A stretch of 62,334 nt of DNA, counting the filler, from Choristocarpus tenellus KU-1152 (taxonomy: Eukaryota > Protista > Phaeophyceae): the NCBI GenBank assembly GCA_964200185.2. It is 10 parts of 10 records of this genome, joined end to end, with 100 filler letters (N's around TTAATTAATTAA, not from the genome) between each part and the next. Parts side by side here need not be neighbours in the genome. Positions count along the whole stretch, not along the records: positions 37,566 to 44,562 come from CAXNAD020006899.1; 9 more parts are not named here. One strand, 5' to 3'. Numbering within the stretch: the first letter of the stretch is position 1; the number at the start of each line of letters is the position of its first letter. Below the pieces are notes generated by a model. That model was not told the DNA's origin and ran no database searches. It saw nothing but the letters and a program-made list of their open reading frames with translations. Below are positions 37,566 to 44,562 of this stretch, in pieces. Position numbers and translations under genes: made by a program.

Positions 37566-38949
37566 CCAAGCAATCTCGCCGGGTTTATCACCTTTATCCT
37601 CTTTGATGATTTTGGGGATACTTTAACAGCTCTACCCTCTAAGATACTTTTGAATCTTTTCTCGCATCTAAATATTCTTCTAGGGCCACATCCTCCTGAT
37701 GAGGGTTGATCACATTTCAGGGATGGGGATGGTGTATATAAAACTCAATAAGGGTCAAAATCGACCCTGTTTTTGATGGTTTCATTCTTTCATCAATGTG
37801 TCTGTGTGCAGTATGAGATCTCTGCTGCACAGATATTTCCCTCTCCCACCCTTGGAATGCACCGATTCTCCATCTTCAACTACTTTAAGCGGAAGAGAAG
37901 CAAGAAGTTGTGGGTCCACTAGACAGAAATGCGGACCAGTACAGCAAATGGGATGCTGACAGCATGAATAAGTGCAGTCCAATCATGGAGAACCTTGATG
38001 GAGAACCTTGATGGAGAATCTTCTGCCCGTTGAATTTTGTGACGGTAAAACGGTAGTACTGAGCTGATTTCGTCATGGTGTACTCTTTCGTGCTGGCTAG
38101 ACAGAGTTGATGAAGAGCAATCACATGGAGAGAAGCGACTCACCAATGGCACTGACGCTATTTGGTAACTAAAATGGTACGCCCATTGGGCACCAGCTCC
38201 TTCAAAGATCTATTTCAGTACAAAGGGCGTAATAGAGGGAGGTTCTATCGCTCAATTAACCAGGTCAGATCATAACTTGTCCTCAACAGGTCTAGGGGTA
38301 CGAGGCGAACGTTGAGATGAACCTTGCATCGACCACGACCGATGCCATCGAAATATCATGGTAGGCAGGAGGATTGTAAATTCTTGCCATACTTAGCTGA
38401 GGGCTGAAGGCGATCAAGAACTATTGTGGTTGAATATCCAGAGAGAAAAGTGACCAATGCGGAAATCAAAAAGGTTCAAGTGATACCTGATGAGTTCTAG
38501 GCTCGAGTATATAGTGGTCACGGCCAGTCCAAGGCCACCCAATTTCTCTCTCGCAAGACTCTTGTACTCGGTTGGCGTCTTCGTCTGGTAGGGACTCAGG
38601 CGGTGACGGAGACGAAGCAAAAACAAAGGGTACAATGTGCCCCTGTAAGGTGTAAGGACATGAACGGTGCACTCGCTTAATCATGGAAGTCCAGGTGGCA
38701 CAAACCTATTTGCCTCTCTGCGCACAATTGTCTTGTCGAGAGCTGTAACCACATGAATCGAACCTCTTTGTTCTTATCTTGCTCCAGCAGGTGGTGGTTT
38801 CATTCTGCAGCCAGTATTGTCAAGGTGATACAATATCTTAGTGTGTAGAAACAAACAAACACACGATTTAATTTGTTTCATGCATGGACTAGGAACCACC
38901 CTCCGATCCCTCATTGTACCCTTGGAAGCTTAAGATAAACTGCTGCCTA

Positions 38950-40200
38950 CTCCCATTATATATTTTCAGGATATGTTGTGTGATTCAAGAGCACGCAAGT
39001 GTCCTGTTCATGTGTGTCGTTGGTCAGTGAGGTACCAAATCAAACGGCTCAGCCCTAACCCTGAAACAGATATCATACTGGCTGGTTGGTGGCGTGTGAC
39101 AGGTTCCCACCCAGGGCAGACACAAATACCTTGTCCCGAGCGTTATTCCCTCCAACCTTAGCTTGGTCCCACTTTGACGCCACTAATACGACGTAGGTGA
39201 CATTCCAGGCAGTCGAATTTGCAGAATCGGACGAGGCTGTCCGTATCGGGTTAGGGAATGGCTGCCACGCGTGAGTTGCTGAGCGAATCGTCCTACTTAT
39301 GGAGTCACCTTGTGATAGCAGTCCTCTTGCAATTGAGTAGATAGTGACTCAGTGGCTTTAGCTCATCTTCAACTAGTGTTGTGTTGCTAATGTGGGCTTG
39401 TTTCTGGAACGCGTTGGAGGAAAACACTTGAGGTCAGTAAGCTACATACCTGCACCCTGAATGTCCTCGTTTGAATGTTTTCGTTTCTCTGCAGCTGCGC
39501 CTGTGAGCGGTGCTGATCTAAGCTCAATGGAACCATCTGGATCTTCAGATCTCTCCAAGTCGGACTCCGGTGAGCTCAAATATGCATAGAAGGGGATTGA
39601 GGGAGAAATGTGCGGGGCAAGAGAAAGCTGGGGTTGAGGTTCATCCTCTTTCGGATTCCATGTCACCGGCAGGCCCCTGGGCTCTGCTCGTACCTCTTAC
39701 TAAATCCAAGTGTGTATAGTTGCAGGAGAAGAGATGCCACCCTGCTGAAACGGCGCACCTGAACTTGTGGAGCGTTCCTTACCACTGGCCCTGTTTGATC
39801 ATGACCCTTGAAGCCAGCCGACGATCTTTAAAGCTTATGAGCACTCTGCCTCTCGAGTTGAAACTATTTGGATGCAGACGACTATATGGGATATGCGAAT
39901 GTACATCCCTTCTGATTAACGGGCGAGTTGCAAGGAAGTACTCATCAACGAAGTGTTGCTTACAACGTTTTCGCACTTGTTGATTTCTGACCATCAACCT
40001 GTTCTCATGTTTATCTCAATAGGAGCATCGAACTACTCTAGTTGTCATGGCTTAACCCCATCCTCCCTCCCTTTCCTGATCTCCAAATCCCAGCCTCTCC
40101 TTTACCTTCAACTTTTGCTAAGCTCATTGACATACTTGGGGAAGTTTCCAGTGAAAGGTCGAGTTTGCATCACCAAGGTGGTGCTACAGGTATGGACAAC
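38950..40200 (-). mobile_element. APE-type LINE remnant (ORF1-like segment plus endonuclease start)
   Basis: GRVLISFKDRRLASRVMIKQGQW is an RRM-like ORF1 segment; downstream TAWNV resembles the APE N-terminal (A/S)WNV motif. Confidence 0.4.
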
Positions 40201-40273
40201 AGAACTCAGTTTCGTCCACTGAATCACTCCCCCTCTCTTTCTATCCTTGCTTGATGCCCCCAAAAATGCTGTC

Positions 40274-43200
40274 ATGATCAACAAAGGGCTGGTGCCAGAG
40301 AATGGTCCCACTCCTGCTCTCACTCAGGACCATGGGACAGTTCAGGGTCAAGGTCAAGTACCAGTGCCAGGACAGGGACAGGGGCACATGAATACTTACA
40401 CTGGGTACGGTGGAGGGGTAGGGATGGGATATAATGGAGTGGGCACTGGAGGTTACAGGCAGCAACAAGGTGGGGGGTATCGTGGGCACCCACAGCAGCA
40501 GCAGCAGCAACAAGGGTATGGCTACCAGTATCCATATGGTGGGATGAACATGGTGAGGCGCAGGTAGCTTATCATCCTTGTTTGGTTTTAATTAAATCCC
40601 CACCTTTATCAACACTAAGTTTAGCATAGGTCTGTTGTGCACAATGAAAGTGCAAATACTTCTTGAGTTTAGAGCTCTTTATTGCTGTGGGGCTTGTATT
40701 TAAGTCTCCTAAGAATTGATGTCACTTGAGGATTGAGGTGATGCTGTTGAACTTTGGACTGAGGGGAAGTGCTGCTGAGCTATTGCATAGCAGGTATATG
40801 AGGCAGAATTACTTCTCTATTTGATCTTTCCACCCTCACTCTAGTTGTTAGTGAAGCTGGAGAGCATACAGGTCGCAATGTTGAGTCTGCCTCTTCTCCC
40901 TAAAATGGTTTGCCTGCTAACTTGGTCTTCTCACTTTGCTTCTGCCAGTATGGTCAGGCCTACCAGCAGCAATACTCAGGGGATATGTCTCAGTTCCACA
41001 AGGGCCACCATCAGCACCAACACTACCAGCAGTTCTACCCTCAGTCCAATGGATACACAACCATGCAAGAGGGCTTCCAGCAGCCCAATGCATATGTCCA
41101 GATGCAACAGGTTCTGGGGCAGGGGCAAGGGCAGGAGGGAAAGCACACAGGGGAGGTGGGGCAGGGGCAGCAGGTCCCTAAGGCTGCTGCACCTGTTGAT
41201 GCAGCTCTGGGGGTGGTCAGGACTGGCTGGTCGAATGGCGGGGCTAGGGACAAGGGGGATGGGGGGTTCTCAGGCCTGTCGGCAGATGCCAATGGGTTTG
41301 TCCCTGCACAGGTTGGAGGACCTGAATGGGATTCAAGAGTCAAAATTGCATTCGAAGAAAAGGACGGTTCAAGAGGGGAAAGGCTGTGAATTGAGTTGGT
41401 TGTGCAGTTGTACGGCAATCAGGTCATGATGTGATGTTGTCCCCTTTTCTGGTTGTTCCTTCGATTGAAATATACTTCTCTTGCTATGGTCATCTGTTTA
41501 ATGTTACTTGCTGTTCTGGTACTCTTGAATCCCTCCCCACGCAACACACACTTTCTCAGATGCCTCCCACAGTTACGACATCTGGCAGGGATGCCTCCTC
41601 TGAGGCTCAGTCCCATGCAATCCTTGGCACTGAGGTCAAGGTGAGCTACCTTTTATTAAAACCCTTATCGAGACAGTAATTATGAAGAATGTTACCTAAA
41701 TTTTCAATCAAAAATTTAAACTTATAAGGCAATAAGATCTAATAAAGTTTTTATTTTCAAGAATATTGCTAAAATTATGTTGTAGTTTTTATGCTTGATC
41801 TTTTTTATTTATAGGATTTCAATCCTGTCTAAGCATTAATACTAATTATTTAAAACTTATATCCATAATCTTACCACTATTTTTGACTCTGGCCATCCCA
41901 AAGTGCGTTTGGAGTCCATAGAAATCAAAAATAAAGCAGATTAGTTGATTTATGCAACGGAGCAGAATTGAAAAGATCATGCTGAAAAAATTTCTGATAA
42001 ACATAAGCAAGCGATTGAAACTGCAATTATGAAACTTAAATCTACTGTTGAATCAGCCGGAGATGATATTGAACAAATCAATAAAAAATAGAGTCTTTGG
42101 CGTCTGCTGGTATAAAAATAGGAGAAGCAATGTATGGAAAAGGAAAAAATCAATCTAAAGAAATGCATTAAAATCAATGGCTGAATTGGTTGTATTAAAT
42201 GACAGTTTAGAGCATTTTTTTCAAGGGAGTTGACTCTAGCATCACTAAATTTTATAAACAAGATAGTTTAACTTTGAAAAGCTTAAAGAATTTAGCTTTG
42301 GTCTTTAGAAGTTTCCATAATTATGCCCAATATTTCTCTTCTTGAGGCCCGCATACCCCAGCTACGAACTTGACTACTTGTTGCTGTTTTATCACTGCTA
42401 GGTCTTTGTGTTGTCCTGGCAGTCCACTACATCCAATCACGTTCATAGAGATCTTGTAGAACAACCAATTGTTACACCTTAACTAGGTGCTCATGGTAAG
42501 AGCAGAAAAATCACCCCAAAGAACCAGCGATGCAACAATGAGGTGTGCAGGAGGACAAAGGCCCCAGGTCTTGAGGAACTGTCATCCATGTCTAATGACT
42601 GCTGAATCAGATGTGTGGATCTTGCCCCAGCCCTGCTCCTATGTGACACAGAGCACACTCTACCATTGTAAAAACCTGGCATGATGGATGCACCATAAGT
42701 GATTGTAAAACTGTTTATTGGTCCTAGGTTTTTCTTACAGGCAGTAATTATGTGATCCTCTTGTCTATAAGGTGTTTTGCAAGTGATGTGTCTCGTGGTG
42801 GAATGACTTCTGGCGACCCATAATATGTCTTGAATTTAATATGCTTATTTTTGAATTTTCGTCCTAACATTAACATGATTCTCTTCTCTTGCCCAACAAA
42901 TTTTGTGCAGCAGTAGTGACACTTTAAAAAGAAAGAGTTTGTTCAGGTCTTGTTGCATTTTTTAAAGGTCTTCGGACTGAGACCTTCACCCTTCGTGGTT
43001 GGACTCAAAATTTTGTCCTTGGTGTTATTCAATGTAAATGCATTTTAAAACAAGTTGCCTGTTGGGAACTGTGAAAGCACAAAAAACCTTTTTTTTGTAG
43101 CAAGGAGCTGTATTTCCAGAAGAAATGGTTCCAATTGTTCCCAGCAGCAGTGCCCACCTCAGTGAGATTGGCCACACAATGGTGATGTGAAGGTATGCCA

Positions 43201-44562
43201 TCCATTGGAAAATTCTTGAGTGCAATAGGAGTCAGATTTGAGCTGATTAGAAGCACGTGCAACAAGTTGCCAGTGGAGACTCTTATTTTCCACGTTTCTA
43301 CTGCACTGAGTCAAATGCTTTTATAAGGTGACTTTCTGTGCATCAGTGGGTATTTTTTTCTTCCTTGTTAAGGCTCCTTAGCAAAATACAATTTTGGCAC
43401 AGCAGTATCTTTCCACAAATCGTTGAACTGTTGGCAATTTATCAGATTTCCTGCATGAGGTTACGCTGAGAAAATACTTCGCAGGCTTGTTTCAAGGTTG
43501 AACACTGCAGCTGTATCAAATAAATCACAAACATCCCCCGATTCTCCTCCTATTTTCCACTCATCCAGTCCCCTCTGTATCGGTCTACTTCAATACAGGA
43601 GGTTGAGGCGAACGGAGCTGCCCCACCTGAGAAGAAAACCTCCAGCTGGGCTGACATTGTTCGCCCAGAGGGATCACGGCAGGTAGCAGGGGAGACTTCT
43701 GCAGGGCAGGGGCAGGCCCCGGCCCAGGGTGCTACATCCTCCAAGCCTGGCCGGTTGCCGCTGGCGGGAGACAATGGAAAGGGAACCAACCGGCAGGTAA
43801 TTGATTGTGTAGTGCCAGGAAAACAAATGTCAACTCTGGCGTTGTTTTGATTTACTCCAGTATTGCACTTTCTGTCTTTGTTTGCGTAAAAATTAGGGGA
43901 GGGGAAGGGGGGAGGGGTTTGCTTGTGTTGGGATATGTTTTGAACTCTGGTTGGAAGCAGTTAATTTGTTTATTCTCTTCTATTTGATATGTCAGGGATG
44001 AAGGAGTGCAGCTTGTAGGGATAGAAGAAGAGCCACGTGGTAGATTATTGCCATTGCGTAAGCTCTTTACCATTACAATCTGTCTTGCCTCTCCTGTCTT
44101 CTGATTTCTTGGTTTGTTTTCCTCACCATATCGCTCCTGGGTAAAGCTTGTTGTGGCCCCTAGCGCCGCAGGACGTCCAACAGCTGCCACCAATATTGAG
44201 GGGGGCACTTCCGGGGCTTCCAATGACATGAGTTATGCCCCCAATGACTACAACAATGCTTATGCCAACAATTACCCAGTTGCCGGGATGAACAACAACA
44301 TTGCTGGTGGTATTGGCAGTGGTAACAGCAATGGAGGCGTGTTTGCCAATGGTTTCGCGAATGGTATGGGTGTTCCTGTTAGCAATGGCACAGGAGGTAA
44401 TGTCAACAATGCAGCTGGTGTTGTTAATAGCCATGGAGTGATGAACAGTGGCTACAATGCTGGTGGAGCTACCAATGGTGGGGGCTACAGTGGGCATGGC
44501 AACCAACAGTTGAGCAATGGCTATGGTGGGGGGGGCAGCGGTGGTGGGTACCAGGGAGGTGG
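40274..44562 (+). CDS. low-complexity prion-like protein with PAM2-like motif; exons ~40274-40552, 40949-41311, 41560-41640, 43599-43796, 44147->44562
   Basis: All inferred junctions are GT-AG, phase 0 and keep the frame open. G/Q/Y-rich start, SGLSADANGFVP, KKTSSWADIV, N/G/Y-rich last exon. The 5' start is uncertain and the 3' end runs off the contig. Confidence 0.8.
41918..42162 (+). pseudogene. dnaK: alphaproteobacterial-type DnaK (Hsp70) C-terminal lid fragment inside an intron
   Basis: IEIKNKAD*LIYATEQN*KDHAEKISDKHKQAIETAIMKLKSTVESAGDDIEQINKK, then after a 1-nt frameshift ESLASAGIKIGEAMYGKG; strongly AT-rich codons. Confidence 0.85.

Follow-up and report, generated by a model that had tools for sequence, protein, structure and literature searches.

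The nucleus of the alga Volvox carteri holds about 9 kb of rickettsial DNA in which four genes (16S rRNA, murB, ddlB and ftsQ) are syntenic; this insert is 88% identical at the DNA level to a known symbiont, and its presence was confirmed by polymerase chain reaction in several strains (PMC4324946). Here we describe a locus in the brown alga Choristocarpus tenellus KU-1152 that can be set beside this case, a decayed shard of the chaperone gene dnaK whose nearest relatives are found in the Rickettsiaceae. The window, the whole stretch of DNA that was analyzed, is 62,334 nucleotides long and consists of 10 parts of 10 records of assembly GCA_964200185.2, joined with filler; all positions are those of the window, and the shard lies within 37566-44562, which is the entire 6,997-bp contig CAXNAD020006899.1. 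The shard is likely a dead fossil of Megaira-like Rickettsiaceae DNA that resides in non-coding nuclear DNA of C. tenellus, a reading in which we place good confidence.

The two algal cases are alike in that DNA of the Rickettsiaceae (Megaira, or “hydra group”) is found in a nuclear assembly, is incomplete or non-functional, is interrupted and flanked by host sequence, and is read as the trace of a former endosymbiont (PMC4324946). Unlike the insert in Volvox, that in Choristocarpus has a single recognizable gene piece of ~240 nt, whose identity to sampled bacteria nowhere exceeds 73%, its host is a stramenopile, and the case is known from sequence alone. From another brown alga, Nemacystus decipiens, one study obtained the genome of a Megaira-like symbiont (PMC10132079). 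In the literature searched, neither a link between Choristocarpus and Rickettsiales nor a transfer of this kind from bacterium to nucleus in brown algae was found; Volvox and animals are the documented cases. The kind of relic is thus already known in other hosts, and the shard adds a brown-algal instance.

Fragments of Wolbachia and Rickettsia are common in the genomes of arthropods and nematodes. The Choristocarpus shard would resemble these transfers in being endosymbiont DNA within host chromosomes that, as is general for this class, mostly decays neutrally and accumulates stops and frameshifts; it differs from them in the kingdom of its host and the genus of its donor, and in that the animal transfers usually comprise many fragments with a high identity to a co-resident symbiont. 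A further likeness exists to nuclear inserts of plastid and mitochondrial DNA (NUPTs and NUMTs), which are likewise short, often mosaic, non-functional, AT-rich and endosymbiont-derived, lie in introns or intergenic DNA, and presumably arise by end joining. Unlike in a NUPT, the identifiable part of the shard is of the Rickettsiaceae type and not of the plastid (cyanobacterial) type, and mitochondrial genomes, to our knowledge, carry no dnaK.

A Broken Fragment of the DnaK Lid

The shard and its lesions are as follows:

41900-42138, plus strand: dnaK pseudogene shard, residues ~522-600 of a DnaK of ~635 amino acids (aa), lid helices of the substrate-binding domain
41942-41944, plus strand: in-frame TAG, where relatives carry Ala, Ser or Thr
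41969-41971, plus strand: in-frame TGA, where relatives carry Leu (TTA/TTG/CTG) and two carry Met
42083-42088, plus strand: A6 run in or next to which the shard has a 1-nt gap against every relative, causing a frameshift

The frame from 41900 reads KVRLESIEIKNKAD up to the TAG at 41942-44, continues as LIYATEQN up to the TGA at 41969-71, and then remains open for 39 codons (KDHAEKISDKHKQAIETAIMKLKSTVESAGDDIEQINKK). Past the A6 run, the similarity resumes one base out of frame as IESLASAGIKIGEAMYGKGKNQSKEMH, and this reading closes at a TAA at 42169-71. The first-pass annotation of this DNA had counted about 80 codons of the DnaK lid with two stops and one frameshift, and re-reading returns exactly this count. 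It had also extended the DnaK content over all of 41678-42370, which has to be corrected, as the homology is confined to ~240 nt, from 41900 (perhaps 41885, with weak similarity) to ~42140.

The frameshift could be a sequencing error, as it falls in a homopolymer of a long-read assembly (C. tenellus is listed among the long-read species by the source paper, bioRxiv 10.1101/2024.02.19.579948). The two stop codons and the truncation are independent of this lesion. A tblastn search with eight full-length Rickettsiales DnaK proteins found residues 517/522-606 and no other DnaK segment anywhere in the contig: the ATPase/nucleotide-binding domain, the β-sandwich and the acidic C-terminal tail are all missing from it. 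An intact open reading frame, as expected of a DnaK/Hsp70 gene, is not present, and because most domains are absent and the remainder is broken by two stops and a frameshift, the shard encodes nothing and is without function.

Despite these lesions, the pattern of substitution in the shard approximates that of pairs of intact genes of equal divergence from metagenome-assembled genomes (MAGs), with the rate of nonsynonymous substitution (dN) raised only slightly. Third codon positions account for 50-56% of the differences between the shard and its nearest relatives, and the ratio of nonsynonymous to synonymous substitution (dN/dS) is ~0.1-0.2, indicating, through this resemblance to intact genes, that most of the 25-30% divergence in DNA arose under selection in bacteria. 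Decay since the transfer would then have been moderate, and the donor would belong to an unsampled lineage.

Homology to Rickettsiales DnaK

Taken singly, the pieces of the shard (32, 39 and 28 aa) match nothing in Pfam or NCBIfam, reach no better than E 0.38 in the PDB (to the lid of yeast SSA1, in the wrong register), and give E 2.4 or nothing against E. coli DnaK, while a phmmer search of 1.84 billion representative proteins with the 39-aa piece returned an unrelated repeat protein as its sole match. Since single pieces are too short, the homology becomes visible only when the shard is read through as one, with an X at each break, and this joined reading was used for the joint comparisons. 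Against the best Rickettsiales loci, it is 55-62% identical over 77-86 aa (E ~1e-23 to 1e-25). These loci came from a scan for the back-translated words KNKAD and GEAMY, spaced 165-195 nt apart, across 185,579 prokaryotic species represented by one genome each. The pattern matched 13 contigs, 11 of which belong to Rickettsiaceae/Rickettsiales MAGs, the other two being assigned to Nitrospiraceae and “Deltaproteobacteria”; it also matched 12 JGI metagenome contigs, no viral contig in IMG/VR and no cyanobacterium among the species genomes. One of the matches, RXKF01 (L021), belongs to a lineage related to “Ca. Megaira” (PMC10132079).

A word search seeded with the lid of the closest MAG added 120 further DnaK proteins, the best of which are 60-64% identical to the shard; the top scorer among them comes from a TARA Oceans scaffold, on which dnaK-dnaJ has a normal bacterial context. 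At the level of DNA, too, the sequences align cleanly, apart from one gap of 3 nt and one of 1 nt, and blastn finds 70-73% identity over ~225 nt (E 1e-26 to 1e-31). The GC content of the shard (0.33) lies within the range of its relatives (0.31-0.38). When the ten residues of the motifs used for fetching are masked and the database size is set to 596 Gb, the match still stands at E 2e-11 to 1e-8, and the 83-94 bits scored against Rickettsiaceae DnaK compare with a peak of 34.7 bits in 200 shuffles of the shard. On these alignments, the DnaK homology of the shard is not in doubt.

The nearest relatives overall are uncultured Rickettsiaceae/Rickettsiales MAGs, with an identity of 57-64% in protein over 76-86 aa (E 1e-23 to 1e-26) and of 70-73% in DNA, and the initial identification of the locus as a decayed dnaK fragment of a Rickettsiales-type endosymbiont is thus supported. 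The shard is colinear with the lid of Megaira-like DnaK (residues ~522-600) and shares with it the pattern KNKAD...LIY...KISD..K...E.AI..LK....ES.D.IEQIN.K.E.LA.A..KIGEAMYG. Unlike these proteins, it has neither their first 520 residues nor their acidic tail (VVDGEFKDVSD), and it is not a gene.

The Specificity of the Rickettsiales Affinity

Other bacterial DnaK proteins, taken from records of plasmids and chromids or through a word search with Nostoc DnaK that returned cyanobacteria only, are more distant from the shard. The free-living alphaproteobacteria Shinella and Sphingomonas are each 36% identical to its lid, E. coli is 27% identical, and the best of 111 matches to cyanobacterial DnaK, the type of the plastid ancestor and here the proxy for plastid DnaK, reaches 31% and 46 bits. 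Even the Nitrospiraceae and Myxococcota sequences that match the pattern are merely 40-42% identical. In a maximum-likelihood tree of 78 lid columns, the shard groups with the uncultured Rickettsiaceae L010, L020, L035 and P0013 with a modest SH-aLRT of 83, in agreement with the placement among Rickettsiales that had been proposed for it; its terminal branch measures 0.49, compared to a median of 0.04. The pattern scan, the identities and the tree all place Rickettsiales clearly nearer to the shard than the other bacteria compared.

The motif K(I/L)GEAMY had initially been taken as a mark of alphaproteobacterial DnaK. This view oversimplifies, as the motif is present in Nitrospiraceae and Myxococcota MAGs and absent from the DnaK of Shinella and Sphingomonas. 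Because KIGEAMY alone is no alphaproteobacterial signature, the case for Rickettsiales rests on the whole lid.

Two observations on the distribution of these motifs stand apart from the shard. The Myxococcota MAG L011 and the Nitrospiraceae MAG L016 both contain KNKAD as well as KIGEAMY, have closely similar lids, and are paired in the tree; their likeness to Rickettsiales DnaK could reflect convergence or a transfer of dnaK between phyla. A viral vector was also considered and is not supported: KIGEAMY alone matched eight viral contigs, of which only L003 has a DnaK, at 28% identity. The protein in question, at 9245-11125 of L003 (IMGVR_UViG_3300032753_001573, 155,688 bp), is a full-length DnaK of 613 aa that ends in ...MKIGEAMY; it may be the chaperone of a giant virus or jumbo phage or belong to a mis-binned bacterial contig.

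An AT-Rich Block with Sharp Edges

The shard is part of a longer block that stands out by its composition:

41650-42345 (approximate), no strand: AT-rich block, Rickettsiales-like in oligonucleotide composition and sharply bounded
41650-41884, no strand: left AT-rich segment without match, GC ~0.19-0.28
42172-42345, no strand: right AT-rich segment without match, GC ~0.28-0.31

Within the block, GC content falls to 0.19-0.34, compared to 0.40-0.50 in the adjoining non-coding DNA. Third-order Markov models, trained on 16 Rickettsiales loci and on the remainder of the contig, yield positive log-odds for Rickettsiales in the block only, and their sign flips within ~50 nt at each of its edges. The drop in GC and the Markov log-odds agree on ~41650-42345, confirming the abrupt AT-rich block of ~700 bp that had first been noticed.

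The segments that flank the shard measure ~235 nt (left) and ~175 nt (right) and are even richer in AT than the shard itself. Their content gave no match in any of several searches. Tblastx and blastn of 41641-41905 and 42136-42420 against all loci collected returned nothing under E 0.05, Pfam provided no match, and scans of the flanks for Rfam families, tRNAs and tandem repeats were empty; for the whole block, blastn against the records of plasmids and phages was negative. The left segment (41650-41884) has no internal repeat, and when the flanks were aligned locally with the shard and with one another, the result was no better than that of shuffles, so that a 20-nt repeat (D2) is ascribed to chance. 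No terminal inverted or direct repeats above chance level bound the block. A foreign origin of the flanks, and with it the description of the insert as a mosaic, is suggested by their composition alone. They could represent intergenic DNA of the donor, further genes of the donor in decay, or DNA of an organelle.

The Host Contig and the Position of the Block

The contig is a GC-moderate eukaryotic sequence in which exon-like stretches have a GC content of 0.50-0.68 and non-coding DNA mostly one of 0.40-0.50. Its annotated and putative host features are:

39461-41389, plus strand: sole annotated gene of the contig, three coding exons (39461-39571, 40289-40552, 40949-41386) followed by TGA
41560-41640, plus strand: putative exon, unannotated, 81 nt, phase 0; pyrimidine tract and AG before, AAG|gtgagc after
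41641-43598, plus strand: putative GT-AG intron, 1,958 nt, containing the AT-rich block; DNA downstream of the gene under the deposited annotation
43599-43796, plus strand: putative exon, unannotated, 198 nt, phase 0, GC 0.65; ...caatacag before, CAG|gtaatt after
44147-44562, plus strand: putative exon, unannotated; its N/G/Y-rich open frame is cut off by the contig end

The annotated gene encodes a Q/G/Y-rich protein of 271 aa (“unnamed protein product [Choristocarpus tenellus]”) to which the open frame at 40910-41386 is 100% identical, and which has no relative but itself among 5.8 billion proteins. Its terminal TGA lies on the same contig, 260 nt upstream of the AT-rich block, and in the deposited contig the bacterial segment thus has host sequence on both sides in one molecule. 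The host open frames of the contig are uninterrupted for 137-146 codons, indicating that its base quality is good.

The block had been described as lying in a spliceosomal intron between two host exons of consistent phase. The splice signals and the phase support this view: the putative intron has the borders AAG|gtgagc...caatacag|GAG, and the 81- and 198-nt exons, each preceded by a pyrimidine tract and AG, stay in phase 0 relative to the upstream frame (provided that its exon stops at 41311) as well as to the frame from 44147. The public annotation does not, since these exons are absent from it and its gene ends at 41389. Searched exon by exon, the host exons and the open frames of the rest of the putative intron match no Pfam family. 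On the strength of the splice signals, the block probably lies within an intron, a placement that we favor with some reserve; otherwise, it lies just downstream of the gene, and in either case it is in non-coding DNA.

Several observations concern the gene itself. The deposited model (P0129) reads through a possible splice donor at 41311|GTTGGA to the TGA at 41387, and the segments at 41560-41640, at 43599-43796 and from 44147 to the contig end are splice-flanked, open in phase 0 and Q/G/N/Y-rich like the annotated gene. From this arrangement, P0129 could be a truncated model, or the ATG at 41560 could open a further gene that the annotation lacks. Without the block, the putative intron would retain ~1.25 kb (42350-43598), several times the length of the other intron-like gaps of the gene (~250-720 nt); this remainder has a host-like composition and no recognizable content. 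The peptide LSADANGFVPAQ (41283-41311) in the annotated protein may resemble the PAM2 (PABP-binding) motif; as Pfam gives no such match at E ≤1, this is a lead only. In the upstream 1.9 kb of the contig, which is otherwise featureless, 37985-38022 holds 2.9 copies of a 13-nt tandem repeat (ATGGAGAACCTTG).

Origin of the Insert and Competing Explanations

The evidence is best explained if a short chromosomal piece of an intracellular bacterium of the Rickettsiaceae type (Megaira-like) was joined into the nuclear DNA of C. tenellus, most likely during the repair of a double-strand break. Its site of insertion would lie in non-coding DNA, probably within an intron and just 10 nt past the 5′ splice site, and ~240 nt of the insert would be the 3′ part of dnaK encoding the chaperone lid. 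The homology, the nearest relatives, the lesions, the borders in composition and the host named on the record are observed directly; physical integration, the intronic position, the mode of insertion and the foreign source of the flanks are what we infer here from the deposited sequence. The alga's lineage probably once carried a bacterium of the Rickettsia family, and the shard would be no more than a molecular fossil of this association between alga and rickettsia, be it past or present.

Were the block instead an artefact of assembly, reads from Rickettsiales in the culture, whether a symbiont or a contaminant, would have been misjoined into a host contig. The Phaeoexplorer pipeline behind the assembly had to strip bacterial reads and contigs from the non-axenic algal cultures (bioRxiv 10.1101/2024.02.19.579948), the contig is short, and a frameshift within an A6 run is at a typical site of long-read error, all of which would fit such an event. 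It would, however, require two false joins only 700 nt apart, and a dnaK that is cut inside the gene at both ends and carries two substitution-type stops is unlike the essential chaperone gene of a living symbiont; the good base quality and the long open host frames further argue against it, making misassembly unlikely. Real nuclear DNA of a secondary kind, such as a host repeat or mobile element that had taken up bacterial DNA, or DNA of another eukaryote in the culture (e.g., a protist hosting Megaira), would account for AT-rich flanks without a match, and the label of the host cannot be cross-checked from a sole gene without relatives. The lack of terminal repeats above chance around the block speaks against a mobile element, and the gene structure and composition fit the intron-rich, GC-moderate genome named on the record, so that we consider a secondary origin improbable, slightly more so than a misjoin.

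The shard might, finally, derive from a gene of the host's own, either as a fragment of plastid dnaK (a NUPT) or as a pseudogene of nuclear mitochondrial-type Hsp70. In red-lineage algae, the plastid genome is rich in AT and includes a dnaK gene, and mitochondrial Hsp70 is of alphaproteobacterial descent, which gives this idea its general plausibility. The comparisons nevertheless favor a bacterial source: cyanobacterial DnaK reaches at best 31% and 46 bits compared to 57-64% and 83-94 bits for Rickettsiaceae, the pattern scan met no cyanobacterium, and the shard combines 70-73% DNA identity to AT-rich Rickettsiaceae with a GC content far from the 0.50-0.65 of the host exons. The PDB includes chains of mitochondrial Hsp70, and neither these nor its other chains, DnaK included, gave the pieces a significant match. 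By these comparisons, an origin from a host gene is very improbable.

Some facts weigh against a rickettsial fossil in the algal nucleus. The AT-rich segments beside the shard match nothing, the contig is just 7 kb long and bears a single orphan gene, and it is by the label of the record that the alga, rather than another eukaryote of the culture, is its owner. Continuity at both junctions is known at the level of the assembled contig alone, and the organellar comparison uses cyanobacterial and PDB proxies in place of eukaryotic mitochondrial Hsp70 and true plastid DnaK, so that both points carry the strength of such data. Moreover, no sampled bacterium is nearer than ~64% protein or 73% DNA identity among the sequences compared, and for this reason none can be named as the donor itself.

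Implications for Brown Algae and Their Symbionts

Taken by itself, the fragment has historical value, and its sole effect is a longer non-coding region. As a nuclear fossil, it would indicate that an early-diverging brown alga (Discosporangiales) harbored an unsampled marine, Megaira-like member of the Rickettsiaceae and that more fragments may be spread across the assembly, a view that we find slightly better supported than its opposite. Megaira-group Rickettsiales are increasingly found to be common and poorly understood symbionts of algae and protists, and there are few routes other than traces in host nuclei to past associations in strains that are now free of the bacteria. If confirmed, the shard would extend the transfer of DNA from bacterium to nucleus to a basal brown-algal lineage and would be reason to screen the Phaeoexplorer assemblies genome-wide, together with the bacterial reads that were filtered out. 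If more fragments are indeed spread across the assembly, they would provide a datable record of rickettsial symbiosis in brown algae, and DNA would be seen to move from such symbionts into the nuclei of stramenopiles.

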